From positions 3,658,001-3,722,000 of the forward strand of contig NC_083277.1 of the NCBI RefSeq assembly GCF_963506605.1: a DNA stretch of 64,000 nucleotides, given 5' to 3'. The DNA is from Zootoca vivipara (lineage: Eukaryota). Shown here in pieces: positions 4,260 to 37,955 of the stretch (position 1 is its first letter; every line of letters begins with the position of its first letter). The translations under genes were made by a program, and so were the position numbers. The notes under the pieces are model-generated. The model saw nothing but the letters and a program-made list of their open reading frames with translations. It did not search any database and was not told where the DNA came from.

Positions 4260-7200
4260 CCCCTTCATGGATCAATGCCTTGTCGTGGCGAAGGGGCGAA
4301 GGGGGCGAAGGGGCTTGAATAACTCAGAGAAGCTATGAGCTATGCCATGCAGGGCCACCCAAGATGGACAGGTCATAGTGGAGAGTTTTGACTAAACGTG
4401 ATCCACCTGGAGAAGGAACTGGCAAGCCACTCCAGTATCCCTGCCAAGAAAACTCCATGGACAAAGACAACAGGCATATAAAAGTTATGACGCTGGAAGA
4501 TGAGCCCCTCAGGTCGGAAGGCGTCCAACATGCTACTGAGGAAGAGCGGAGGACAAGTACAAGTAGATTCAGAGCTGATGAAGCGGCTGGGCCAAAGCCG
4601 AAAGGACGCTCAGTTGCGGATATGCCTGGAAGCGAAAGGAAAGTCCGATGCTGTAAAGAAAAATATTGCATAGGAACCTGGAATGTAAGAACCATGAGTG
4701 GAGGTAAGCTGGATGTGGTCAAAAATGAGATGACAAGAATAAATATCGACATCCTGGGCATCAGTGAACTAAAATGGAAGGGAATGGGCGAATTCAGTTC
4801 GGGTGACTATCATATCTACTACTGTGGGCAAGAATCCTGTAGCAGAAATGGAGTGGCCCTCATAGTCAACAAAAGAGTGGCAAAAGCTGTAATGGGATGC
4901 AATCTCAAAAATGACAGAATGATCTCGATACGAATCCAAGGCAGACCTTTTAACATCACAGTAATCCAAGTTTATGCACCAACTACTGGTGCTGAAGAAA
5001 GTGAAATTGACCAATTCTATGAAGACCTACAACAACTTCTAGAAATGACACCAAAGAAGGATGTTCTTCTCATTACAGGGGATTGGAATGCTAAAGTAGG
5101 GAATCAAGAGATAAAAGGAACAACTGGCAAGTTTGGCCTTGGAGTTCAAAATGAAGCAGGGCAAAGGCTAATAGAGTTCTGTCAAGAGAACAAGCTGGTC
5201 ATCACAAACACTCTCTTCCAACAACACAAGAGACGACTCTACACATGGATATCACCAAATGGGCAGCATCGAAATCAGATTGATTATATTCTCTGCAGCC
5301 AAAGATGGAGAAGCTCTATACAGTCAGCAAAAACAAGACCTGGAGCTGACTGTAACTCAGATCATCAGCTTCTTATAGCAAAATTCCAGCTTAAACTGAA
5401 GAAAGTAGGAAAAACCACTGGGCCAGTAAGATACAATCTGAATCAAATCCCTTATGAATACACAGTGGAAGTGAGGAACAGGTTTAAGGATTTAGATTTG
5501 GTGGACAGAGTGCCTGAAGAACTATGGATGGAGGCTCGTAACATCATACAGGAGGCAGCAACGAAAACCATCCCAAGGAAAAGGAAATGCAAGAAAGCAA
5601 AATGGCTGTCCAACGAGGCCTTACAAATAGCGGAGGAGAGGAGGCAAGCAAAATGCAAGGGAGATAGGGAAAGATACAGGAAACTGAATGCAGATTTCCA
5701 AAAAACAGCAAGGAGAGACAAGAGGGTCTTCTTAAATGAGCAATGCAAAGAAATAGAGGAAAACAATAGAATGGGGAAAACCAGAGATCTGTTCAAGAAA
5801 ATTGGAGATATGAAAGGAACATTTCGTACAAAGATTACCATAATCAAGGACAAAAGTGGTAAGGACCTAACAGAAGCAGAAGACATCAAGAAGAGGTGGC
5901 AAGAATACACAGAGGAATTATACCAGAAAGATATGGAGGTCTCATACACCCCAGGTAGTGTGGTTGCTGACCTTGAGCCAGACATCTTGGAGAGTGAAGT
6001 CAAATGGGCCTTAGAAAGCATTGCTAATAACAAGGCCAGTGGAAGTGATGATATTCCAGCTGAACTATTTAAAATTTTAAAAGATGATGCTGTTAAGGTG
6101 CTACACCCAATATGCCAGCAAGTTTGGAAAACTCAGCAATGGCCAGAGGATTGGAAAAGATCAGTCTACATCCCGATTCCAAAGAAGGGCAGTGCCAAAG
6201 AATGCTCCAACTACCGCACAATTGCACTCATTTCACACGCTAGCAAGGTTATGCTTAAAATTCTACAAGGCAGGCTTAGGCAGTATGTGGACCGAGAACT
6301 CCCAGAAGTGCAAGCTGGATTTCGAAAGGGCAGAGGAACCAGAGACCAAATAGCAAACATGCGCTGGATTATGGAGAAAGCTAGAGAGTTCCAGAAAAAC
6401 GTCTACTTCTGCTTCATTGACTATGCAAAAGCCTTTGACTGTGTCGACCACAGCAAACTATGGCAAGTTCTTAAAGAAATGGGAGTGCCTGATCACCTCA
6501 TCTGTCTCCTGAGAAATCTCTATGTGGGACAAGAAGCTACAGTTAGAACTGGATATGGAACAACTGATTGGTTCAAAATTGGGAAAGGAGTACGACAAGG
6601 TTGTATATTGTCTCCCTGCTTATTTAACTTATATGCAGAATTCATCATGCGAAAGGCTGGACTAGATGAATCCCAAGCCGGAATTAAGATTGCCGGAAGA
6701 AATATCAACAACCTCAGATATGCAGATGACACAACCTTGATGGCAGAAAGCGAGGAGGAATTAAAGAACCTTTTAATGAGGGTGAAAGAGGAGAGCGCAA
6801 AATATGGTCTGAAGCTCAACATCAAAAAAACCAAGATCATGGCCACTGGTCCCATCACCTCCTGGCAAATAGAAGGGGAAGAAATGGAGGCAGTGAGAGA
6901 TTTTACTTTCTTGGGCTCCTTGATCACTGCAGATGGTGACAGCAGTCACGAAATTAAAAGACGCCTGCTTCTTGGGAGAAAAGCAATGACAAACCTAGAC
7001 AGCATCTTAAAAAGCAGAGACATCACTTTGCCGACAAAGGTCCGTATAGTTAAAGCTATGGTTTTCCCAGTAGCGATGTATGGAAGTGAGAGCTGGACCA
7101 TAAAGAAGGCTGATCGTCGAAGAATTGACGCTTTTGAATTATGGTGCTGGAGGAGACTCTTGAGAGTCCCATGGACTGCTAGAAGATCAAACCTATCCAT

Positions 7201-7500
7201 TCTTAAGGGAATCAGCCCTGAGTGCTCCCTGGAAGGACAGATCGTGAAGCTGAGGCTCCAATACTTTGGCCACCTCATGAGAAGAGAAGAATCCTTGGAA
7301 AAGACCCTGATGTTGGGAAAGATTGAGGGCACTAGGAGAAGGGGACGACAGAGGACAAGATGGTTGGACAGTGTTCTCGAAACTACGAACATGAGTTTGA
7401 CCAAACTGCGGGAGGCAGTGCAAGACAGGAGTGCCTGGCGTGCTATGGTCCATGGGGTCACGAAGAGTCGGACACGACTAAACGACTAAACAACAACAAC
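4260..7500 (+). mobile_element. BovB (RTE clade) LINE, full length (copy 1)
   Basis: Typical BovB 5' leader, single long ORF, (CAA)n tail, TSD ATCCTCTCCTCC at 4248-4259 and 7501-7512. Confidence 0.97.
4457..7489 (+). CDS. BovB endonuclease-reverse transcriptase, uninterrupted (~1010 aa from first in-frame ATG)
   Basis: APE motifs GTWNVRT, GDWNAKVG, QIDYIL, SDHQ; RT motifs FIDYAKAFD, GVRQGCILSP, YADD; no stops or frameshifts. Confidence 0.95.
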   Translation: MDKDNRHIKVMTLEDEPLRSEGVQHATEEERRTSTSRFRADEAAGPKPKGRSVADMPGSERKVRCCKEKYCIGTWNVRTMSGGKLDVVKNEMTRINIDILGISELKWKGMGEFSSGDYHIYYCGQESCSRNGVALIVNKRVAKAVMGCNLKNDRMISIRIQGRPFNITVIQVYAPTTGAEESEIDQFYEDLQQLLEMTPKKDVLLITGDWNAKVGNQEIKGTTGKFGLGVQNEAGQRLIEFCQENKLVITNTLFQQHKRRLYTWISPNGQHRNQIDYILCSQRWRSSIQSAKTRPGADCNSDHQLLIAKFQLKLKKVGKTTGPVRYNLNQIPYEYTVEVRNRFKDLDLVDRVPEELWMEARNIIQEAATKTIPRKRKCKKAKWLSNEALQIAEERRQAKCKGDRERYRKLNADFQKTARRDKRVFLNEQCKEIEENNRMGKTRDLFKKIGDMKGTFRTKITIIKDKSGKDLTEAEDIKKRWQEYTEELYQKDMEVSYTPGSVVADLEPDILESEVKWALESIANNKASGSDDIPAELFKILKDDAVKVLHPICQQVWKTQQWPEDWKRSVYIPIPKKGSAKECSNYRTIALISHASKVMLKILQGRLRQYVDRELPEVQAGFRKGRGTRDQIANMRWIMEKAREFQKNVYFCFIDYAKAFDCVDHSKLWQVLKEMGVPDHLICLLRNLYVGQEATVRTGYGTTDWFKIGKGVRQGCILSPCLFNLYAEFIMRKAGLDESQAGIKIAGRNINNLRYADDTTLMAESEEELKNLLMRVKEESAKYGLKLNIKKTKIMATGPITSWQIEGEEMEAVRDFTFLGSLITADGDSSHEIKRRLLLGRKAMTNLDSILKSRDITLPTKVRIVKAMVFPVAMYGSESWTIKKADRRRIDAFELWCWRRLLRVPWTARRSNLSILKGISPECSLEGQIVKLRLQYFGHLMRREESLEKTLMLGKIEGTRRRGRQRTRWLDSVLETTNMSLTKLREAVQDRSAWRAMVHGVTKSRTRLND

Positions 7501-9935: not shown

Positions 9936-12050
9936 CCCTTCATGGATCAATGCCTTGTCGTGGCGAAGGGGCTTGAATAACTCAGAGAAGCTATGAGCTA
10001 TGCCATGCAGGGCCACCCAAGATGGACAGGTCATAGTGGAGAGTTTTGACTAAACGTGATCCACCTGGAGAAGGAACTGGCAAGCCACTCCAGTATCCCT
10101 GCCAAGAAAACTCCATGGACAAAGACAACAGGCATATAAAAGTTATGACGCTGGAAGATGAGCCCCTCAGGTCGGAAGGCGTCCAACATGCTACTGAGGA
10201 AGAGCGGAGGACAAGTACAAGTAGATTCAGAGCTGATGAAGCGGCTGGGCCAAAGCCGAAAGGACGCTCAGTTGCGGATATGCCTGGAAGCGAAAGGAAA
10301 GTCCGATGCTGTAAAGAAAAATATTGCATAGGAACCTGGAATGTAAGAACCATGAGTGGAGGTAAGCTGGATGTGGTCAAAAATGAGATGACAAGAATAA
10401 ATATAGACATCCTGGGCATCAGTGAACTAAAATGGAAGGGAATGGGCGAATTCAGTTCGGGTGACTATCGTATCTACTACTGTGGGCAAGAATCCTGTAG
10501 TAGAAATGGAGTGGCCCTCATAGTCAACAAAAGAGTGGCAAAAGCTGTAATGGGATGCAATCTCAAAAATGACAGAATGATCTCGATACGAATCCAAAAT
10601 TTTAAAAGATACGAATTAAAATTTTAAAAGATGATGCTGTTAAGGTGCTACACCCAATATGCCAGCAAGTTTGGAAAACTCAGCAATGGCCAGAGGATTG
10701 GAGAAGATCAGTCTACATCCCAATTCCAAAGAAGGGCAGTGCCAAAGAATGCTCCAACTACCGCACAATTGCGCTCATTTCACACGCTAGTAAGGTTATG
10801 CTTAAAATTCTACAAGGCAGGCTTAGGCAGTATGTGGACCGAGAACTCCCAGAAGTGCAAGCTGGATTTCAAAAGGGCAGAGGAACCAGAGACCAAATAG
10901 CAAACATGCGCTGGATTATGGAGAAAGCTAGAGAGTTCCAGAAAAACGTCTACTTCTGCTTCATTGACTATGCAAAAGCCTTTGACTGTGTCGACCACAG
11001 CAAACTATGGCAAGTTCTTAAAGAAATGGGAGTGCCTGATCACCTCATCTGTCTCCTGAGAAATCTCTACGTGGGACAAGAAGCTACAGTTAGAACTGGA
11101 TATGGAACAACTGAGTGGTTCAAAATTGGGAAAGGAGTACGACAAGGTTGTATATTGTCTCCCTGCTTATTTAACTTATATGCAGAATTCATCATGCGAA
11201 AGGCTGGACTAGATGAATCCCAAGCCGGAATTAAGATTGCCGGAAGAAATATCAACAACCTCAGATATGCAGATGACACAACCTTGATGGCAGAAAGCGA
11301 GGAGGAATTAAAGAACCTTTTAATGAGGGTGAAAGAGGAGAGCGCAAATTATGGTCTGAAGCTCAACATCAAAAAAACCAAGATCATGGCCACTGGTCCC
11401 ATCACCTCCTGGCAAATAGAAGGGGAAGAAATGGAGGCAGTGAGAGATTTTACCTTCTTGGGCTCCTTGATCACTGCAGATGGTGACAGCAGTCACGAAA
11501 TTAAAAGACGCCTGCTTCTTGGGAGAAAAGCAATGACAAACCTAGACAGCATCATAAAAAGCAGAGACATCACCTTGCCGACAAAGGTCCGTATAGTTAA
11601 AGCTATGGTTTTCCCAGTAGTGATGTATGGAAGTGAGAGCTGGACCATAAAGAAGGCTGATCGCCGAAGAATTGATGCTTTTGAATTATGGTGCTGGAGG
11701 AGACTCTTGAGAGTCCCATGGACTGCTAGAAGATCAAACCTATCCATTCTTAAAGAAATCAGCCCTGAGTGCTCCCTGGAAGGACAGATCGTGAAGCTGA
11801 GGCTCCAATACTTTGGCCACCTCATGAGAAGAGAAGAATCCTTGGAAAAGACCCTGATGTTGGGAAAGATTGAGGGCACTAGGAGAAGGGGACGTCAGAG
11901 GACAAGATGGTTGGACAGTGTTCTCGAAGCTACCAACATGAGTTTGACCAAACTGCGGGAGGCAGTGGAAGACAGGAGTGCCTGGCGTGCTATGGTCCAT
12001 GGGGTCACGAAGAGTCGGACACGACTAAACGACTAAACAACAACAACAAC
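9936..12050 (+). mobile_element. BovB LINE copy 2 with ~1.13-kb internal deletion
   Basis: Intact 5' leader and (CAA)n tail; TSD AATCCTGCAAA at 9924-9934 and 12051-12061; ORF split into 10046-10627 and 10645-12036; inserted into a cassette exon. Confidence 0.96.
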
Positions 12051-12171
12051 AATCCTGCAAACCTAGCGAGGATGGAAGGGGGAAGATGGACGGTTGACTT
12101 GGTCAGGCTGCCTCCTGTATCCCTCCCCAAAACAGTTGAGGATTCCCTCCCAGGACCCTCAGAGAGATCTG
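12051..12171 (+). pseudogene. Cassette exon A1, 3' part (disrupted by BovB copy 2)
   Basis: [16 protein letters not shown]...ERS|G then GTGAGT donor; 5' part at ~9870-9934 lacks the polypyrimidine acceptor. Confidence 0.7.
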
Positions 12172-12404
12172 GTGAGTTTCAGGGGGAAAGAGATGGGGGT
12201 AGGGGGTGGATAGAGAATCTGGTGAGTTTCAGGGGGAAAGAGATGGGGGCAGGGATGGATGGGGCTGGGGGGGGACACATTGGCAAGGTGTTGGACAAAC
12301 TTGTCCCAGGGATCTTTACAAGGTGGCAAAATTCTAAGGCACTAATTCTTATAAGTGTTATATAATAAAATAAAGGCATTTTTCATTTATTTAGTCCATT
12401 TCCA

Positions 12405-15479: not shown

Positions 15480-16187
15480 GACCCTGCAGCTTGCTTTGGC
15501 ATGTGAGCGCCTCACGAAGGGTGGAAGAGGTTGATTCTGCAAACCTGGCGAGGATGGAAGGGGGAAGATGGACAGTTGACTTGGTCAGGCTGCCTCCTGC
15601 ATCCCTCCCCAAAACAGTTGAGGATTCCCTCCCAGGACCCTCAGAGAGATCTGGTGAGTTTCAGGGGGAAAGAGATGGGGGTAGGGGGTGGATAGAGACA
15701 GGAGGGGGAAAACACATTGGCAAGGGGTGAAGATGGAGAGGAGAGAAAATGCAGGAAGAAGGAAGCAGGGAGGCCTTCTCCCATGCTCCTCTTTGTTTCT
15801 GGAATCTGCTTTCATAGTGTAGCCAGAAACCTTTTTCATCTCACAGGATTTCAATTTTACATGTTTCCACCCCCCCCCCCAACTACATGATTTGATGATG
15901 ATGATGATGATGACCTAAACTAATACAGAAATAGGGGTAAAGGGTGTTATGAAAATGCTTCCAGTAATTATAGATTATTTATTTATTTGAAGCACCTCTA
16001 CCGCTTTTATTTTTTCTAGACAATTATAATTATGTAATGTATATATCGCCCCTCATACAAAGTTGTTCCTTGAAACCCTAAAAGCATTTCCCCCCTTTGC
16101 TCCAAAGCAGATAATCAACAGAATCAACAGATAATCAACAGAACTCTGCAGAATGTGGAATGAGCTTCATTGCTGGTGGAGACCTTT
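15480..16187 (+). pseudogene. ZNF unit A: cassette exon 15480-15653 plus stump of ZNF exon from 16111, truncated by BovB copy 3
   Basis: Acceptor CCCAG|, donor G|GTGAGT; ZNF acceptor AAAGCAG| with a 20-bp duplication; [13 protein letters not shown] then BovB tail. Confidence 0.8.
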
Positions 16188-19065
16188 GTTGTTGTTTAGT
16201 CGTTTAGTCGTGTCCGACTCTTCGTGACCCCATGGACCAGAGCACGCCAGGCACTCCTGTCTTGCACTGCCTTCCGCAGTTTGGTCAAACTCATGTTCGT
16301 AGCTTCGAGAACACTGTCCAACCATCTTGTCCTCTGTCGTCCCCTTCTCCTAGTGCCCTCAATCTTTCCCAACATCAGGGTCTTTTCCAAGGATTCTTCT
16401 CTTCTCATGAGGTGGCCAAAGTATTGGAGCCTCAGCTTCACGATCTGTCCTTCCAGGGAGCACTCAGGGCTGATTTCCTTAAGAATGGATAGGTTTGATC
16501 TTCTAGCAGTCCATGGGACTCTCAAGAGTCTCCTCCAGCACCATAATTCAAAAGCATCAATTCTTCGGCGATCAGCCTTCTTTATGGTCCAGCTCTCACT
16601 TCCAAGGATTGTGTCATCTGCATATCTGAGGTGGTTGATATTTCTTCCAGCAATCTTAATTCCGGCTTGGGATTCATCTAGTCCAGCCTTTCGCATGATG
16701 AATTCTGCATATAAGTTAAATAAGCAGGGAGACAATATACAACCTTGTCGTACTCCTTTCCCAATTTTGAACCAATCAGTTGTTCCATATCCAGTTCTAA
16801 CTGTAGCTTCTTGTCCCACGTAGAGATTTCTCAGGAGACAGATGAGGTGATCAGGCACTCCCATTTCTTTAAGAACTTGCCATAGTTTGCTGTGGTCGAC
16901 ACAGTCAAAGGCTTTTGCATAGTCAATGAAGCAGAAGTAGACGTTTTTCTGGAACTCTCTAGCTTTCTCCATAATCCAGCGCATGTTTGCTATTTGGTCT
17001 CTGGTTCCTCTGCCCTTTCGAAATCCAGCTTGCACTTCTGGGAGTTCTCGGTCCGCATACTGCCTAAGCCTGCCTTGTAGAATTTTGAGCATAACCTTGC
17101 TAGCGTGTGAAATGAGCGCAATTGTGCGGTAGTTGGAGCATTCTTTGGCACTGCCCTTCTTTGGAATTGGGATGTAGACTGATCTTCTCCAATCCTCTGG
17201 CCATTGCTGAGTTTTCCAAACTTGCTGGCATATTGGGTGTAGCACCTTAACAGCATCATCTTTTAAAATTTTAAATAGTTCAGCTGGAATATCATCACTT
17301 CCACTGGCCTTGTTATTAGCAGTGCTTTCTAAGGCCCATTTGACTTCACTCTCCAAGATGTCTGGCTCAAGGTCAGCAACCACACTACCTGGGGTGTACG
17401 AGACCTCCATATCTTTCTGGTATAATTCCTCTGTGTATTCTTGCCACCTCTTCTTGATGTCTTCTGCTTCTGTTAGGTCCTTACCACTTTTGTCCTTGAT
17501 TATGGTAATCTTTGTACGAAATGTTCCTTTCATATCTCCAATTTTCTTGAACAGATCTCTGGTTTTCCCCATTCTATTGTTTTCCTCTATTTCTTTGCAT
17601 TGCTCATTTAAGAAGACCCTCTTGTCTCTCCTTGCTGCTTTTTGGAAATCTGCATTCAGTTTCCTGTATCTTTCCCTATCTCCCTTGCATTTTGCTTGCC
17701 TCCTCTCCTCCGCTATTTGTAAGGCCTCGTTGGACAGCCATTTTGCTTTCTTGCATTTCCTTTTCCTTGGGATGGTTTTCGTTGCTGCCTCCTGTATAAT
17801 GTTACGAGCCTCCATCCATAGTTCTTCAGGCACTCTGTCCACCAAATCTAAATCCTTAAACCTGTTCCTCACTTCCACTGTGTATTCATAAGGGATTTGA
17901 TTCAGATTGTATCTTACTGGCCCAGTGGTTTTTCCTAATTTCTTCAGTTTAAGCTGGAATTTTGCTATAAGAAGCTGATGATCTGAGTTACAGTCAGCTC
18001 CAGGTCTTGTTTTTGCTGACTGTATAGAGCTTCTCCATCTTTGGCTGCAGAGAATATAATCAATCTGATTTCGATGCTGCCCATTTGGTGATATCCATGT
18101 GTAGAGTCGTCTCTTGTGTTGTTGGAAGAGAGTGTTTGTGATGACCAGCTTGTTCTCTTGACAGAACTCTATTAGCCTTTGCCCTGCTTCATTTTGAACT
18201 CCAAGGCCAAACTTGCCAGTTATTCCTTTTATCTCTTGATTCCCTACTTTAGCATTCCAATCCCCTGTAATGAGAAGAACATCCTTCTTTGGTGTCATTT
18301 CTAGAAGGTGTTGTAGGTCTTCATAGAATTGGTCAATTTCACTTTCTTCAGCACCGGTAGTTGGTGCATAAACTTGGATTACTGTGATGTTAAAAGGTCT
18401 GCCTTGGATTCGTATCGAGATCATTCTGTCATTTTTGAGATTGCATCCCATTACAGCTTTTGCCACTCTTTTGTTGACTACGAGGGCCACTCCATTTCTT
18501 CTATGGGATTCTTGCCCACAGTAGTAGATATGATAGTCATCCGAACTGAATTCGCCCATTCCCTTCCATTTTAGTTCACTGATGCCCAGGATGTCGATAT
18601 TTATTCTTGTCATCTCATTTTTGACCACATCCAGCTTACCTCCATCCATGGTTCTTACATTCCAGGTTCCTATGCAATATTTTTCTTTACAGCATCGGAC
18701 TTTCCTTTCGCTTCCAGGCATATCCGCAACTGAGCGTCCTTTCGGCTTTGGCCCAGCCGCTTCATCAGCTCTGAATCTACTTGTACTTGTCCTCCGCTCT
18801 TCCTCAGTAGCATGTTGGACGCCTTCCGAACTGAGGGGCTCATCTTCCAGCGTCATAACTTTTATATGCCTGTTGTCTTTGTCCATGGAATTTTCTTGGC
18901 AGGGATACTGGAGTGGCTTGCCAGTTCCTTCTCCAGGTGGATCACGTTTAGTCAAAACTCTCCACTATGACCTGTCCATCTTGGGTGGCCCTGCATGGCA
19001 TAGCTCATAGCTTCTCCGAGTTATTCAAGCCCCTTCGCCACGACAAGGCATTGATCCATGAAGGG
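16188..19065 (-). mobile_element. BovB LINE copy 3, in-frame RT deletion, no TSD
   Basis: ORF 16196-18955 (919 aa) lacks 114 aa directly after YADDT; left and right flanks are unrelated parts of the unit. Confidence 0.95.
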
Positions 19066-22200: not shown

Positions 22201-22714
22201 ATCATGACCCAGAGCCTAGTTCTTTCGCCATAAGAACATTCCTTTTCTTATCAAAATCCAGGCGTTCTGCCAAATGTAGGAACAAAACATGCTGGACAGA
22301 AAGGCATATGAGCATAGATTCCTATACCAGGTGGCTTGTATGTAAACAAGGAAACTAACTGGCAGAAAACAGCGCCTCTCATCATCTCTCTAGTAGGCCA
22401 AAAAGACAGAGAAGATTAGGAAAGCAATTATACATGGCTCATTTCTCGCAGTTTTGTACCTGAAAAGCATAGGCTCACACCTATAGGCCTACACCTGCTT
22501 ACATCACAAGGTGTATACTCTGACGGAAACTTTCCACACGCCATACATTTAAATGGATTCTCCTGTGTGAGTTCTCTGGTGTTTACTAAGTTCATCACGT
22601 CGGCTGTAGCTCTTTCCACACTCCAAGCATTTAAAGTGTTTCACCCCAGTGTGAGTTTGCCGGTGTGTTCTAAGGCCTCCACTATGACTGAACCTCTTCC
22701 CACACTGCATGCAT

Positions 22715-24339
22715 TTAAATGGTTTCTACACCTGTGTGAGTTCGCTGATGTGAAGTGAGGTTTGAACTCTGACGGAAACTCTTTCCACACTCCAAGCATT
22801 TAAACGGTTTAACCGCTGTGTGAGTTTGCAGGTGTGTTGTAAGGTTTGAACTCTGACGGAAACTCTTTCCACACTCCATACATTTAAGTGGTTTCTCCCC
22901 TGTGTGAATTCGTTGGTGTTCTGCATGTGTTCGACTATCACTGGAAGTCTTTCCACATTCCAAACATTTAAATGGTTTCTCCCCCGTGTGAGTTCGCTGA
23001 TGTCTAGTGAGGGTTGTCTTTCGGCTGAACCACTTTCCACACTTTAGACATTCAAATGGTTTCTCCCCCGTGTGAGTTCGCTGATGTGAAGTGAGGTGTG
23101 TCTTTTGGCTGAACCACTTTCCACACTTTAGACATTCAAATGGTTTCTCCCCTGTGTGAGTCCGTTGATGTATTCGAAGTGAATTGCTATGACGGAATCT
23201 CTTTCCACACTCCATACAAGTAAATGGCTTTTCCCCTGTGTGAATTAGTTGATGTTTTCTAAGTGTTGCCTTTTCACCGAAGCTCTTTTTACACTCTATA
23301 CATTTAAAAGGTTTCTCCCCTGTGTGAGTTTGATGATGTGAATAGAGTTGTGCATTCTGATTAAAGCTCTTTCCACACTCCATACATTTAAATGGTTTTT
23401 CCCCTGTATGAATTAGCTGGTGTAGTTTAAGAATGTCATTACGACTAAAACTTTTTCCACACTCCATACATTTAAATGGTTTCTCTCCTGTGTGAATCCG
23501 CTGGTGTCTTGTAAGCTTTCCACTCTGCCTGAAGCACTTCCCACATTCCACACATTCATATTGTTTTTCCCCTGCATGATTAAATAGTCTTTCCCCCGTG
23601 TGACTTCGTTGAAGGTTTGAAAGTTTCACCTTCTGACTAAAGCTCTTTCCACACACAGGACGCTTAAATGGTTCCCCCCCTGTGTAAGTCTGTCGATGGT
23701 TTGTAAGGTCTCCACCAGCAATGAAGCTCATTCCACATTCTGCAGAGTTCTGTTGATTATCTGCTTTGGAGCAAAGGGTGGAAATGCTTTTAGGGTTTCA
23801 AGGAACAACTTTGTATGAGGGGCGATATAAAAATTAAATAATTATAATTGTCTAGAAAAAATAAAAGTGGTAGAGGTGCTTCAAATAAATAAATAATCTA
23901 TAATTACTGGAAGCATTTCCATAAGACCCTTTACCCCTATTTCTGTATTAGTTTAGGTAATCATCATCATCATTTAATCATGTCTAAAGTGTGGAAACAT
24001 GTAAAATCGAAATCCTGGGAGATGAAAAAGGTTTCTGGCTACACTATGAAAGCAGATTCCAGAAACAAAGAGGAGCATGGGAGAAGGCCTCCCTGCTTCC
24101 TGCTTCCTGCCTTTTCTCTCCTCTCCATCTTCTCCCCTTGCCAATGTGTCCCCCCCCCCGGTCTCTATCCACCCCCTGCCCCCATCTCTTATCCCCTGAA
24201 ACTCACCAGATCTCTCTGAGGGTCCTGGGAGGGAATGCTCAACTGTTTTGGGGAGGGATGCAGGAGGCAGCCTGACTAAGTCAACCGTCCATCTTCCCCC
24301 TTGCATCCTCGCCAGGTTTGCAGGATCAGCCTCTTCCAT
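22715..24339 (-). CDS. ZNF unit B: predicted spliced CDS join(24339-24207, 23760-22715), ~392 aa, 10 C2H2 fingers; additional upstream cassette exon 28058-27885
   Basis: Phase-1 donor and acceptor join in frame; TGEKPF linkers; ends by frameshift (TGVETI*); its promoter appears lost at the 29403 breakpoint. Confidence 0.7.
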
Positions 24340-26724
24340 CCTTCGTGAGGCGCTCAGAAGCCAAAGCAAGCTGCAGGATCCTGGGAGGGAGGAAGAAGCA
24401 AAGGGAGCCTAAGAGACCCTGCAAGCGTTTTCCTGCCCCAGAGGTTTAGCTCTTGAAGGCTAAGTCTCCCTGTGTGTGGAGTTACCACACACAGTTTCCA
24501 TGGTGAAAGAGGGGGACCTTCCTCTTGAAACACACTTTGCAAGAAAGCCCTGCCACATAGAGTGACTGGGGAAACTCAGCCAGATGGGTGGGATATAAAT
24601 AACATCATCCTCATGACTAGAGTCATGCCTATTGCATCTACTTTTACCTCTGTTAGATGGGAGTTTTGGCACTGCAGTCTCCCTGGCCACAAGCTCCCAG
24701 TGATTTCAATAAAAAAAACCACAATAATAACACATATTATTATCCCCCCGCCCATCTGGCAGGGTTTCCCCAGCCACTCTGCTGGCTGCTAGGTCCTCCC
24801 CCAATGTGGAAGAAATGAATACAAATGAATTTTATTCTTAAGGAAGGAATAGTAAAAATGACCATGCCTGCCTTAAGGTTCTGTGAGCAAAGAATATCAC
24901 AAACAGCCCAAAGGAGGGGCCACTTCGCAGAACTGTTTATCTATGCACAAGAATGTTTGACAACCTGAGTTTAATTGCTGGAGACACTTAAAATGAGTCA
25001 ATTGACTGATCTGACAGAGTTCCGTCACTGCTGGGACCTCAGAAAGGCCACCGACTTAAGGGGACACCTACACCAGGGGTCAGCAAACTTTTTCAGCAGG
25101 GGGCCAGTCCCCTGTCCCTTAGACCTTGCCGTGGGGGGTAGCAGACTATATTTTGAAAAAAGAAAAATGAACGAATTCCTATGCCCCACAAATAAACCCA
25201 GAGATGCATTTTAAATAAAAGCACACATTCTGCTCATGTAAAAACGCACTGATTTCCGGACCATCCACGGGCCGGATTTAGAAGGAGAATGGGCGGGATG
25301 TGGCCCCCGGGCCTTAGTTTGCCTACCCATGCTCTGCACCGATCAGTTCTGGACTAGGGACTCTGGACACAGAGGAACTAGCTGTAAGTACACTCTGGAC
25401 GCGGAACATTGAATATTTACCTGTGTGGGAGAGTATAGGTTAAAACTGCAATAAGGAGACCTAAAAGGCACCTGTCTCTCCAAGTCTCCAAGTAGGGTTT
25501 AAGAGTCAAGGGAATGTTAGAGGTCAGAACTGGTGTATTGTAAGAAAATGGTTGTACGATTGAAAGAAGGAAGACTAGAATAGAAAGCCTGCAGGAAGTC
25601 AGTTTGTCTTACGTTGTGAGTTTAAGGACGGATGTGAGAAGTAGCTGTTTTGAAAAGAGGAAAGTAAAAAGGAAGAGAAACGCCAAGACAAGATGATGGC
25701 AGCTGTAGTAAAAGAGGCTCAAGGAAGTGAGATGGACAAGACTGGGGGAAAGGAATGTTTGCGCCTATTGCAAGCAGACAGGAGATTGGAAAAGGGAATG
25801 GTGTAAATGTTCGGTTTCTGATAATTGGTTCTCATGGGAAACCTACAGGTTCTTACTTCACACAATTAACTCAAGGCAGTGTCAATTTACTCTTGGCAGA
25901 AAGCCATGGCCTGCCTGGCCTGGCAACAACTCTCTGATTGGTTGATGACCAGCACTGAACTCTGTTAGCTAGGAATGCTAGCACAGTTGTTTCTTGTGGG
26001 TGTTAGGAGTAGGAGTGCTGCGTATGGTTGGAGAGAGAGAGACAGAGAGGATTTATTTTGCTTTGCTTTGTATGCAGAAACTCTGCTGGTTTTATTTTCT
26101 TTTAATAAATCCTGTAAATAGTTATTCTGCGTCTAGCCGACTAGTCATTTCTACCTCAACTAGCTTCTGCGCTGTGCAGGAAAACTCTGCTACGTTTGGG
26201 CTAAAGCCACTACAGCTATGCCTGACACTTCAAAATCCTAAGAGTAAAAGGTTAGAGGATGTGGCAGATTGGAGAGGAATAGGAACAGGAGCAAGAGAGG
26301 AAAAGATAAGGAGCTATGAGGGCTGATGCCCTCCAGGATTAGGGGAATCAGGGGTCCAGCACCTCCTGGAAAAATACGAAGGGGACCCCATGGTAAAACT
26401 CCAAATCAGGGGTGCCACTATAGAAGCATTGATATGTATGTTTGATTAGCATCCCCTGCATTGTAAAGGGGGTTGGACTGGATGACCTTTATGGTTTTAT
26501 GGCATCACCTACACTTTTTGGAGGACAGTTGCAAAGGAACTTAGAGAGATGGAAAGCCCAGCACCCTGAAATCACCTGGTGCAATATGCGGATGACATGC
26601 CAAAGAATATGAACAATGCGTAGATTGTTAAATTATTAAGGAGAAGCTGGATATAAAGTGTGCAAGGAAAAAACCCAGATTGGAAAAGAACAGGGTTCTA
26701 ATAGGATTCTGTCGAAACTGGATA

Positions 26725-27637: not shown

Positions 27638-29139
27638 TACCACTATATGAGGGCTGGCACAGTCCTTGCATAATTCTCCTATAAAAGAGAACATAAAGAA
27701 CTGGGAATGGACTAAATAAATGAAAAATGCCTTTATTTTATTATATAACACATAAGAATTAGTACCTTAAAATGTTGCCACCTTGTAAAGATCCCTGGGA
27801 CAGGTTTGTCCAACACCTTGCCAATGTGCCCCCCCCCCCGTCTCTATCCATGCCCGCCCCCATCTCTTTTCCCCTGAAACTCACCAGATCTCTCTGAGGG
27901 CCCTGGGAGGGAATGCTCAACTGTTTTGGGGAGGGATGCAGGAGGCAGCCTGACCAAGTCAACCGTCCATCTTCCCCCTTCCATCCTCGCTAGGTTTGCA
28001 GGATCAGACTCTTTCAAACTTCCTAGGGAGCTCAGAAGTGAAAAGAAGCCGCTGGTTCCTGAGACGGAAGAAGAAGAAAAAGGAGCTTCAGAGACGCTGC
28101 AAGCATTTTCCTGCCCCAGAGGTTTAGCTGTTGAAGAGCAAGTCTCCTTGTGTGTAGATTTACCACACACAGTTTCCATGGTGAAAGAGGGGGGCCTTCC
28201 TCTTGAAACACACTTTGGAAGAAAACCCTGCCACCTTCAGTGACTGGGGAAACCCAGCCAGATGGGTGGGATATAAATAACGTCATCATCATCATCATCA
28301 TCATCATCATGATTGGAGTCATGCCTTTTGTGTCTACTTTTATAACTGTTAGATGGGAGCTTTGGTATTGCAGCCTCCCTGGCCACAAGCTCCCAGTGAC
28401 TTCAATTAAAAAACACCACAATAACAACAATTATTATTATTATTACCCCAGGCATCTGGCAGGGTTTCCCCAGCCACAAACTCCCTTCCTCCAGCCTTCC
28501 TTCCTTTCCACTGTAGCCCCTCCCCCCAGGTCATGTGCCCTAGAAGAGAATATGCCCACGCAACACAAAGATACTGTAGACAAAAAATTATGCAGGAAGA
28601 AATATCTGGATATAAAAAGAAGAAAAAGGGAAGGGGGTAATCATAATATGTAATAGAAAAGAAATTAGCATTATGAACGCCCTCCCATCAGAGGTCAGGG
28701 AGAAGAACTACCTGACATTTAGAAAACACCTAAAGGCAGCCCTGTTTAGGGAAGTTTTTAATCTGTGATATTTTAATGTATTTTTATATTTGTTGGAAGC
28801 CGCCCAGAATGGCCAGGGAAACCCAGCCAGATGGGCGGGTTATAAATAATAAATAATAAATAATAAATAATAAATAATAACCGTGGAAGGGGGGGGAGAG
28901 AGGAAAGTCAACATTAAATGTGTATATTATATTTGGGTGAATGTTAGTGTGTTATTTGTAAAAAGAAAACGAAAAATGGAATTTATTATAAAATTCCAGA
29001 GAGGGGCATCCGGTTAGGGTGCAATAGATTCTAATGGATTGCTTTGAAGTCAATTCAGCGCCAAATAACAATAACAATAACAATAATAATAATAAATGTC
29101 CTTCAGTAGCACCTTAAAGACCAACTAAGTTTTTATTTT

Positions 29140-29403: not shown

Positions 29404-31307
<1,904 letters not shown>

Positions 31308-32454: not shown

Positions 32455-33180
<726 letters not shown>

Positions 33181-35165: not shown

Positions 35166-36292
35166 GGGGGGGGGGGGTTGGACTAGATGACCCTCAGGGT
35201 ACCTTCCAGCTCCACAGTTCTATGGTTCCATGGGGCCATGAGGGCTTTGGCCCCCACAATAAAACACTTGATTGGGCGTGGGGTGGGTGGGTGTCTGTGC
35301 ACTGTGTCATGTGATCAGTTATGTGGGGTGGGGATTTCCTTCCCCCCCCAATGTTTAATTCAAGTTGGCACCCCTGGGGTGGAGAGAGAGAGAGACACGT
35401 GGCCTTTGGGCAAAAGGGCTCCATCTTGGGTGCTGGCAGGGAAATCTCCGGAGGGGCTGCCTTGGCTTCTCCCTCCGGCCCAGCACTCTCCTTAAAGTCA
35501 CATCCAAAAATGAGGGGAAGGGGGGGGTCCCAATTCCTCCCCCCCTTCCTACTTGGAAACTGCATCTCCCCCGGGGACTGGGGGCTCCCAAGGTAGGATG
35601 CTGCACGACTCCGAATTAGACCATTGGTTCTCCTGGGTCAGTGTTGCTGACACAGACTGGCAGCAATGTTTCTTTGGGGTTTCGCAGGCAGGGAGTTCCT
35701 CTCAGCCCTATCTGGCTGGGGATTGATCCTGGCAATTTTATGCATGCAAAGAAGCTTCCCACCTAAATCTGGTTGGCCACCCTGAGGTCAGGAGGCTGAC
35801 TAGGTGGGCCATTTGGCCTGACCCAGCAGGACTCTCGTGATGTTCTTAAGAGTTGCACCCCTTTCCCCTAAATGGGTGGGGGGAGAAGGAGGGCGACTGC
35901 AGTGCCAGAGTTCCAAGATGGCAAGCACAAAAGTCAAAAAAGCCCTGGCTGGAGGGAGGGAGGGGAACATCCTTCTCCGAAGTCTCACCTGGTGCATGTT
36001 TCTGGCTGTCAGAAAAGGAGGAATAGGCAGAGCAGCCCTGTGCAGATTTACTCATAAGGAAGCCCCGGCGGGGAGAGGACAGATTGAATTGGTATCACAA
36101 AAAAACCTTTAAAAATGGGGCTCCTGTTGGGAAGGGGGAACGGGCTTCTCTGGGGCAGGAGAATGTTTTGGGCAGGAGAATCCCTGAAGGGACTCTTGAG
36201 GCTCCCTTTGCGTCTTCTTCCCTCCCAGGAACCTGCAGCTTCTGAGCTCCTCAGGAAGGACCAAAGAGGCTGATCCTGCAAACCTAGTGAGG

Positions 36293-37955
36293 ATGGAAGG
36301 TGGAAGATGGACAGTTTACTTGGTCAGGCTGCCTCCTGCATCCCTCCACAAAACAGTTGAGGATTCCCTCCCAGGACCCTCAGAGAGATCTGGTGAGTTT
36401 CAGGGGGAAAGAGATGGGGGTAGGGGGTGGATAGAGACAGGAGGGGGAAAACACATTGGCAAGGGGAGAAGATGGAGAGGAAAGAAAAGGCAGGAAGAAG
36501 GAAACAGAGAGGCCTTCTCCCATTCTCCTCTTTGTTTCTGGAATCTGCTTTCATAGAGTAGCCAGAAACCTTTTTCATCTCACAGGATTTTGATTTTACA
36601 GGTTTCCTCCCCACTACACGATTAAATGATGATTACTTAAAGTAATACATAAATATTGGTAAAGGGTGTTATGGAAAATCCTTTCAGTAATTATAGATTA
36701 TTTATTTATTCGAAGCACCTCTACCACTTATATTTTTTCTAGACAATTATAATTATTTATGTAATTTATATATTGCCCTTCATACAAAGATGTTCCTTGG
36801 AACCCTAAAAGCATTTCCCCCCTTTGCTCCAAAGCAGGTGACGCAGACAATCAACAGAAATCTGCAGAATGTGGAATGAGCTTCATTGCTGGTGGAGACC
36901 TTACAAACCATCAACAGACTCACGCAGGGAGTAAACCATTTCATTGTACTGTGTGTGGAAAGAGCTTTGGTCGGAAAAATACGCTTGAACAGCACCAACA
37001 AACTCACACAGGGGGGAAACCATTTCAGTGTAATGAGTGTGGGAAGAGCTTCGGTCGGAATTATACGCTTGAACGGCACCAACAAACTCACACAGGGGGA
37101 AAACCATACGAATGTATGGAGTGTGGAAAGTCTTTTGGCTACAAATCACACCTTACCAGACACCAGCGAACTCACACAGGGGAGAAGCCTTTTAAATGCA
37201 TGGAATGCAAAAAGTGCTTCAGCGTAGGTAGAGACCTTTCAAGACATCTACAAATACACACAAGGGAGAAACCCTTTAAATGTATGTTGTGTGGGAAATG
37301 TTTCAGTGACGAAGGAAACCTTGCAAGACACCAACTAACTCACACAGGGGAGAAGGCATGGCAATGTATGGAGTGTCAAAAGTCGTTCAGTCAGAAATCA
37401 CACCTTACCACACACCAGCGAACTCACACAGGGGAGAGGCCATTTAAATGCATGGAGTGCGGAAAGGACTTCAATGAAAATCCAAAGCTTAAGATACATC
37501 TACGAACTCACACAGGGGAGAAACCTTTTAAATGTCTGGAATGCGGAAAGGGCTTTAATCAGAGTGGACACCTTACTGTACATCAACGTATTCATACAGG
37601 GGAGAAACCCTTGAAATGTATGGAGTGTGGGAAGAGCTTCCGAGAAGGTTCAGCATTTAGTGTACATGTACGAACTCACACAGGGGAGAAACCTTTTAAA
37701 TGTTTGGAGTGTGGAAAGTGCTTCATTGCTAGTGGAACACTTCGGAAACATCAGCGAATTCACACAGGGGAGAAACCCTTGAAATGTATGGAGTGTGGGA
37801 AGAGCTTCCGAGAAGGTTCAGCATTTAGAGTACATTTACGAACTCACACAGGGGAAAAACCATTTCAGTGTATTGAGTGTGGAAAGTGCTTCATTGCTAG
37901 TGGAGCACTTCGGAAGCACCAGCGAATTCACACAGGGGACAAGCCACTTGTATAA
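36293..37955 (+). CDS. ZNF unit E: predicted spliced CDS join(36293-36392, 36838-37955), ~405 aa, 12 C2H2 fingers
   Basis: ATG-GAA-GGT..TCT-G|GTGAGT joined to AAAGCAG|GT-GAC.. is in frame with ORF 36876-37955; all 12 fingers canonical. Confidence 0.8.

Follow-up and report, generated by a model that had tools for sequence, protein, structure and literature searches.

A lacertid-restricted candidate leader exon joined to C2H2 zinc finger arrays in Zootoca vivipara

Lineage-specific expansions of zinc finger protein (ZNF) genes usually reuse KRAB, SCAN, or BTB, and a 64,000-nucleotide (nt) stretch of the lizard Zootoca vivipara (contig NC_083277.1, positions 3,658,001 to 3,722,000; here termed the window) raises the question of what stands before the fingers when neither KRAB nor SCAN is present. 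A focal gene within the window (36229-37955) places a short exon directly upstream of its finger exon, and an initial annotation had tentatively read this exon as a diverged KRAB-B box in a family that had lost KRAB-A. The window contains ten copies of the exon with constant splice signals and a constrained 33-codon core, has neither KRAB-A nor SCAN, and encodes a peptide whose database relatives are confined to ZNF models of Lacertidae. With moderate confidence, we interpret the element as a lineage-restricted (Lacertidae), finger-associated leader cassette exon that is spliced in phase 1 to the finger exon. The exon is real and probably translated, and we infer from sequence that it would be spliced and translated in Z. 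vivipara itself.

The pattern TCTGGTGAGT matched the 64-kb window 11 times, compared to 0.13 matches expected from shuffled sequence. Ten of these matches are exon 3' ends, by which we refer to the copies: 12171, 15653, 36392, 41430, 42322, and 46860 on the plus strand and 24207, 27885, 56125, and 58360 on the minus strand. The 11th (12218-12227) lies in a 50-bp tandem duplication of the 12171 donor region (12172-12221, plus strand), which creates a second TCTG/GTGAGT site (slashes mark exon boundaries). The donor GTGAGT is present in 10/10 copies with 0 differences at +1 to +6, and a polypyrimidine tract followed by CAG forms the acceptor in 9/10, the 12171 copy being cut by a long interspersed nuclear element (LINE). 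Because an acceptor is conserved in nine copies and a donor in ten, the leader exon is an internal exon rather than a first exon. Its consensus is 174 nt long and symmetric (phase 1-1); owing to this symmetry, it has been duplicated within genes and can be stacked in frame.

Five copies have the consensus length (15653, 24207, 27885, 42322, and 46860). The 41430 copy is shortened to 162 nt by a 12-nt in-frame deletion in the core, and the 56125 copy is shortened to 159 nt by the in-frame loss of 15 nt from the exon's 5' part. The focal 36392 copy (164 nt) and the 58360 copy (176 nt) both carry a frameshift, in each case 5' of the core ATG. At 12171, 120 nt are left, measured from the 3' end, where the 3' tail of the LINE abuts. 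Length is thus divisible by 3 in 7/9 full-length copies, and all seven are open from the acceptor. Pairwise identity among copies is 75-97%, with several copies in dead units included. The initial annotation had described ten copies ending in TCTG/GTGAGT, a single 12-nt in-frame indel in the core, and frameshifts located upstream of the core ATG, and each of these points agrees with the copy alignment. Its statement that the frame M[EQ]GGRW...GPSERS is kept throughout holds for 9/10 copies, the 41430 copy having ACG in place of ATG. Its picture of a core beginning with an ATG needed correction, as the whole 174-nt exon is open from the acceptor in seven copies.

Divergence among the copies is not uniform. 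The mean pairwise difference is 0.208 in the upstream intron, 0.173 in the 5' part of the exon, 0.103 in the 99-nt core, 0 in the donor hexamer (+1 to +6), and 0.229 in the intron from +7 to +60; core divergence is therefore half that of the flanking introns. In the core frame, the proportions of nonsynonymous (pN) and synonymous (pS) differences are 0.068 and 0.188, respectively, giving a pN/pS of 0.36 (bootstrap 95% interval, 0.16-0.78), compared to 0.98 and 1.16 when the same DNA is read in the remaining two frames. Within subtype I (8 copies), the core pN/pS is 0.20 (versus 2.86 and 1.12 in the other frames), and its distinct variants comprise 11 synonymous and 8 nonsynonymous changes against a neutral synonymous share of 24% (binomial p, 0.0016). 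These values show that the 33-codon core is under frame-specific purifying selection. The 5' part of the exon, with a pN/pS of 1.7 to 1.95 in the family frame, looks unconstrained, and the seven codons before the core ATG hold 1 synonymous versus 6 nonsynonymous variants. Because pN/pS is low in the core and not in the 5' part or these preceding codons, protein-level constraint begins at about the core ATG.

The core ATG itself is kept in 9/10 copies in the context AGGATGG (A at -3, G at +4). The focal exon is 10 nt below the consensus length and is consequently off the family phase-1 frame 5' of this ATG; read in the family phase, it reaches a TGA after five codons, so that a coding reading of the focal gene requires translation to start inside the exon. 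Its only usable start is the core ATG at 36293, since a 10-nt deletion takes the 5' part out of the family frame. Two expectations of the initial annotation are upheld here: translation beginning within the exon, for the focal gene, and a substitution ratio in the core that departs from neutrality, which the 5' part of the exon does not share.

The exon reaches its fingers through a homologous finger-exon acceptor (ccaaagcag/), with in-frame joins at 24207, 36392, 46860, and 56125. The first three lead to finger open reading frames (ORFs) of 348, 372, and 459 codons, each a single exon with 10, 12, and 15 canonical fingers, respectively, and TGEKP-type linkers. At the focal gene, the exon ends with one extra G beyond its 33-codon core, and the finger exon is joined in phase 1 (G/GT GAC...). 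The finger ORFs match the Pfam families zf-C2H2 and zf-H2C2_2 (E, 1e-56 to 1e-110), as expected for C2H2 polydactyl genes. All four joins had been predicted and are present in the sequence, but the 56125 unit is interrupted by a TAA; the same frame stays open for 362 further codons, and the 24207 paralog has GAA (E) at this position. The 56125 unit is likely a very young pseudogene; alternatively, the TAA at 54694-54696 is either a polymorphism or an assembly error. Genes carry 1-3 copies of the exon (12171 and 15653; 27885 and 24207; 36392 alone; 41430, 42322, and 46860; 58360 and 56125), and 10/10 copies share the orientation of the nearest downstream finger exon.

We next consider where else the peptide occurs. 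When the ten peptides were combined into a profile and compared with 1.84 billion representative proteins, seven matched at E<=1e-10 (E, 4e-43 to 9e-14); six of the seven carry a name, and each of these is a ZNF model of Lacerta agilis, Podarcis muralis, or P. lilfordi. Two word-index searches (5.8 billion proteins) added only further Podarcis models. Neither the profile nor the word-index matches included an annotated protein encoded by the window itself. The earlier assignment to a lizard family is thus supported, the peptide having been found in these searches in Lacerta and Podarcis models only. The relatives include XP_032991998.1 (L. agilis "zinc finger protein 34-like"), XP_077779541.1, A0A670I1H8, and A0A670I024 (P. 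muralis), as well as CAI7934869.1, CAI5768290.1, and CAI5768268.1 (P. lilfordi). Like the window genes, they attach the same peptide (approximately 79-85% core identity) to C2H2 arrays with the same exon boundaries (...SERS/G or D), forming a lacertid group in which a peptide exon of the pattern ..[SP]PASLP...GPSERS is spliced to a C2H2 array. XP_032991998.1 (P0121) and XP_077779541.1 (P0122) contain two exon copies in frame, with boundaries exactly as predicted, and in the RefSeq model P0121, translation begins within the first copy, at the upstream in-frame ATG (MKETDP...).

The relatives differ from the window genes in that their exon is stacked twice, follows a degenerate SCAN-like N terminus, or precedes half a KRAB-A, and their finger exons begin differently. 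Across these contexts, the exon is a symmetric and movable module that lies 5' of several different finger exons within Lacertidae. The exons of the window were searched separately rather than as a joined spliced protein; a homology search with the focal finger exon up to 37742 retrieved only generic ZNFs (<=60% identity), and these matches served as the KRAB and SCAN controls described below. A metagenome ORF (P0128; 200 amino acids on a 1878-nt contig) contains four tandem 34-residue repeats, ..W.QWLRLGPSK.PNTVGDSLPSPE.., which share approximately 12 of 21 residues with the leader peptide (E, 4e-5). This likeness is probably due to chance inflated by repetition.

The absence of KRAB-A and SCAN was assessed by two means. 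When the N termini of 120 ZNF proteins, including squamate SCAN-KRAB proteins, were compared to the window by tblastn, the only matches beyond the finger arrays were the exon itself (via P0010) and fragments of transposable elements (TEs); 85 of the fetched proteins were KRAB-A positive by hidden Markov model (HMM). HMMs were also built from the KRAB-A and SCAN segments of fetched ZNF proteins and from exons upstream of the leader exon in Podarcis. Across six frames of the 64 kb (2,499 pieces, all filters off), the best E values were 0.45 for KRAB-A, 0.42 for SCAN, and 0.3 for the Podarcis upstream exons, and the positive controls (85 KRAB-A and 10 SCAN) were recovered. The exon peptides likewise matched no Pfam family at E<=10. 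In this respect, the initial annotation, which had described a locus free of KRAB-A and SCAN, was accurate, and the window contains neither the KRAB-A (PF01352) that defines a KRAB-ZNF nor the SCAN (PF02023) that defines a SCAN-ZNF. KRAB-A is needed for canonical TRIM28 recruitment; lacking it, the poly-ZNF proteins of the window cannot recruit TRIM28 canonically. Whether lizard KRAB domains recruit KAP1/TRIM28 is itself not yet settled (PMC3971581).

In the reading that we favor, the exon acceptor would take an upstream first exon that is probably noncoding, and the exon would supply the start codon in a strong Kozak context. It would add a conserved 33-residue N-terminal peptide, joined in phase 1 to a single large C2H2 finger exon, and the predicted products are poly-ZNF proteins without KRAB-A and without SCAN. 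A number of observations weigh against this reading. The copies are young paralogs, such that recency or gene conversion partly explains their conservation; the pairwise pN/pS values are not independent and rest on small counts (19 variants), and the variable columns are distributed flatly across codon positions (11, 10, and 12). An intact finger ORF lies behind 3/10 copies only (24207, 36392, and 46860). The peptide, besides matching no Pfam family, gave no usable match in an ESM Atlas search, and AlphaFold2 run on P0121 as a single sequence gave no confident fold and was uninformative (mean predicted local distance difference test score, 36). Finally, five Podarcis models (P0010, P0125, and P0130-P0132) have the exon in an internal position, after approximately 140-190 coding residues that include QHWEAQKQDFLKT; the leader exon is thus not the start exon in these other genes.

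The segment upstream of the exon in the five Podarcis models reads QHWEAQKQDFLKT...SFRGAADAS.WP...LLPD and looks like a degenerate N-terminal extension of the reptile SCAN/Gag-capsid region. One of the five, P0131, has a UniRef name describing it as SCAN-box-containing, yet it has no match to Pfam SCAN.

These internal positions bear directly on an alternative in which the exon is an internal coding repeat domain, translation starts in upstream coding exons that went unrecognized or lie outside the window, and the focal copy belongs to a decaying gene. Such a domain would account for the phase-1 frame that seven copies keep open from the acceptor, their indels (12 and 15 nt) all being in frame, for the two copies stacked in frame in P0121 and P0122, and for an acceptor conserved even in the most upstream copies. 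It does not sit well with the lack of any homolog of the Podarcis upstream exons, SCAN, or KRAB-A in any frame of the 64 kb, nor with the 5' part of the exon, whose pN/pS indicates no protein-level constraint. The focal finger ORF is moreover intact, with 12 fingers, and the RefSeq model P0121 starts inside the exon. On balance, we regard an internal repeat domain as unlikely, though it is the alternative that fares best.

The identification suggested by the initial annotation, namely, that the exon is a strongly diverged KRAB-B box left after loss of KRAB-A, did not withstand profile comparison. The KRAB-B exon of KRAB-ZNF genes is, like the leader exon, a short phase 1-1 exon situated just before a single large finger exon, and canonical KRAB-B is present in lacertids (e.g., P0083 of L. 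agilis). The peptides share the weak pattern P..L.r.E.G..W..DL with KRAB-B, and hhalign independently selected the alignment initially proposed (against KPDVISQLERGEEPWvpDL) as its best local match. This match, however, covers 20 columns with a P value of 0.025-0.036 and an hhalign probability of 1.4-1.9%, whereas the exon is far longer (174 nt) and has its own start codon. Scores of the peptides on an HMM of nine canonical B boxes range from -1.6 to +0.8 bits, a level reached or exceeded by 8-48% of 3,000 shuffles, so that the profile check first suggested for KRAB-B returned a score at the level of chance. Canonical B boxes, in contrast, are nearly invariant across amniotes. The phase 1-1 structure is not diagnostic of KRAB-B either, because phase 1 is common to the neighboring exons of these genes.

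Exon order provides a further argument. P. lilfordi P0127 carries the leader exon upstream of half a KRAB-A (Pfam KRAB positions 16-42; E, 0.005; 16.8 bits, under the cutoff of 20.4), the reverse of the A-then-B order of KRAB-ZNF genes. Nor did hhalign relate the exon to the SCAN-to-KRAB linker of squamate SCAN-KRAB-ZNFs (P, 0.58-0.74). A KRAB-B origin of the exon, in a locus without KRAB-A, appears to us quite improbable. The loss of KRAB-A and the competitor ZNFs that the initial annotation also envisaged are conjectural.

Comparably little probability attaches to the proposal that the exon is a noncoding 5' untranslated region or a decaying exon, conserved through recent duplication, gene conversion, and splice-signal constraint. 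The high identity of copies in part located in dead units, the flat distribution of variable columns, and the lack of a detectable domain or fold are what this proposal predicts. The deficit of nonsynonymous change is nonetheless specific to one frame (0.36, or 0.20 in subtype I, versus approximately 1 or more; p, 0.0016), the ATG is retained in a strong context in 9/10 copies, and the peptide is kept in coding models of Lacerta and Podarcis. An exonized part of a TE or dispersed repeat is very improbable: although exon copies are twice as numerous as finger exons, in six of them homology to the others is limited to approximately -228 to +70 nt, the surroundings are full of LINE and other repeat fragments, and the tandem repeats of P0128 weakly resemble the peptide, the copies have ragged boundaries with no common termini (5', -153 to -817; 3', +12 to +1500) and uniform orientation relative to the fingers, the database relatives are ZNF models save for one 142-residue fragment that reads through both splice sites (P0123), and the P0128 match is one short unit counted four times.

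Units usually become homologous at a point approximately 55-65 nt 5' of the acceptor, or about -228 relative to the exon end, and the ragged edges of this homology fit segmental and intragenic duplication better than a transposon with fixed termini. As to what the leader peptide does, we infer that it may serve as a small motif for interaction or effector function and not simply as a passive leader. A bolder version, in which the 33 residues are a new, lacertid-born effector or interaction module that replaces KRAB and SCAN in one ZNF subfamily and is dosed by stacked cassettes (1-3 per gene), is rather unlikely on present evidence. With regard to this version, the segment WTVDLVRL may bear a loose resemblance to eh1-type corepressor motifs (FxIxxIL).

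Table 1. Leader exons, finger exons, and related features of the window
Feature	Position	Strand	Description
Leader exon copy 12171	12052-12171	+	5' side truncated by LINE tail; 50-bp donor duplicate up to 12221
Leader exon copy 15653	15480-15653	+	174 nt; dead unit
Finger exon remnant of 15653 unit	16111-16186	+	Short-duplication frameshift; cut by LINE 16196-18955 (-)
Finger exon of 24207 gene	22715-23760	-	348 codons, 10 fingers; in-frame join, homologous acceptor
Leader exon copy 24207	24207-24380	-	174 nt, MQGGRW; extra in-frame upstream ATG; intact gene
Upstream cassette copy 27885	27885-28058	-	174 nt, open frame; without own finger exon, upstream of 24207 gene
Focal leader exon	36229-36392	+	164 nt; acceptor ...ccctcccag/G, donor G/GTGAGT
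Focal 33-codon core	36293-36391	+	Starts at first ATG of exon (exon position 65), context AGGATGG
Focal intron	36393-36837	+	445 nt, GT...AG
Focal finger exon	36838-37955	+	ORF of 372 codons, 12 C2H2 fingers; stop TAA 37953-37955
Upstream cassette copy 41430	41269-41430	+	162 nt; core ATG replaced by ACG, upstream in-frame ATG retained; subtype II (PTTSD...)
Upstream cassette copy 42322	42149-42322	+	174 nt, open frame, both ATGs
Leader exon copy 46860	46687-46860	+	174 nt; intact gene
Finger exon of 46860 gene	47252-48630	+	459 codons, 15 fingers
Finger exon of 56125 unit	53605-54893	-	In-frame join; TAA at 54694-54696 after 66 codons
Leader exon copy 56125	56125-56283	-	159 nt, 15-nt in-frame deletion in 5' part
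Upstream cassette copy 58360	58360-58535	-	176 nt, frameshift 5' of core ATG; subtype II

The exons in Table 1 are set among finger arrays and repeats. Finger arrays occupy 22567-23554 (-), 29479-31166 (+), 32500-33175 (+), 36945-37931 (+), 47344-48612 (+), and 52895-54693 (-). The frame changes several times in those at 29479-31166 and 32500-33175, and their own strand carries no leader exon upstream of them. Situated between the 27885 and 36392 units, these two arrays probably represent decayed ZNF exons. Three LINE copies have endonuclease and reverse-transcriptase ORFs: 4388-7489 (+; 1033 amino acids), 10645-12036 (+; 463 amino acids), and 16196-18955 (-; 919 amino acids). The second of these has cut short the 12171 leader exon, which it directly adjoins, and a (CAA)n-like tail lies at the junction. 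Two further segments, 57611-58150 (-) and 46459-46635 (-), are similar to the C-terminal portion of reverse transcriptases from CR1/L2-type LINEs and are matched by the TE-derived N terminus of the fish protein P0053 (E, 9e-34 and 1.5e-7, respectively); they sit between or just upstream of leader-exon copies. CpG-rich patches considered as candidate promoters (7.8-8.6, 26.8-27.4, 39.8, and 55.0-55.6 kb) revealed no shared first exon and are mostly repeated or TE-like segments. A conserved donor sought at -228 to -800 upstream of four copies was not found in this repeat-rich region.

In itself, the absence of KRAB and SCAN is ordinary, because lizards have many ZNF-only genes, of which Anolis carolinensis has 723 models (Liu et al. 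2014, PMC3971581, Table 1). Like the window genes, lizard ZNF-only polydactyl genes are single-exon tandem C2H2 arrays without KRAB, SCAN, or BTB, and they form lineage-specific clusters with many pseudogenes. In contrast to the genes of that survey, the window subfamily shares a conserved and duplicated N-terminal exon, which is absent from the survey's description (PMC3971581). What is new here is this shared, constrained, and duplicated exon.

Finger-associated N-terminal modules of other lineages include the FAX box and FAR repeats of Xenopus and FiNZ of cyprinids, and to our knowledge, only a few lineages have invented a finger-associated module of their own. Compared by description, the leader exon resembles FAX, FAR, and FiNZ in being a lineage-specific N-terminal module of an expanding ZNF subfamily, and stacking of the exon parallels the variable repeat number of FAR. 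FAX, FAR, and FiNZ have some experimental characterization, whereas the leader exon is known from sequence alone. If the peptide is only a leader, the locus would be an unremarkable ZNF-only cluster whose genes have a start exon in common. If the exon is confirmed as a translated, constrained module, it would offer a young, datable example of how such a module originates and spreads and would provide a concrete peptide for assays of repression and partner binding in squamates.

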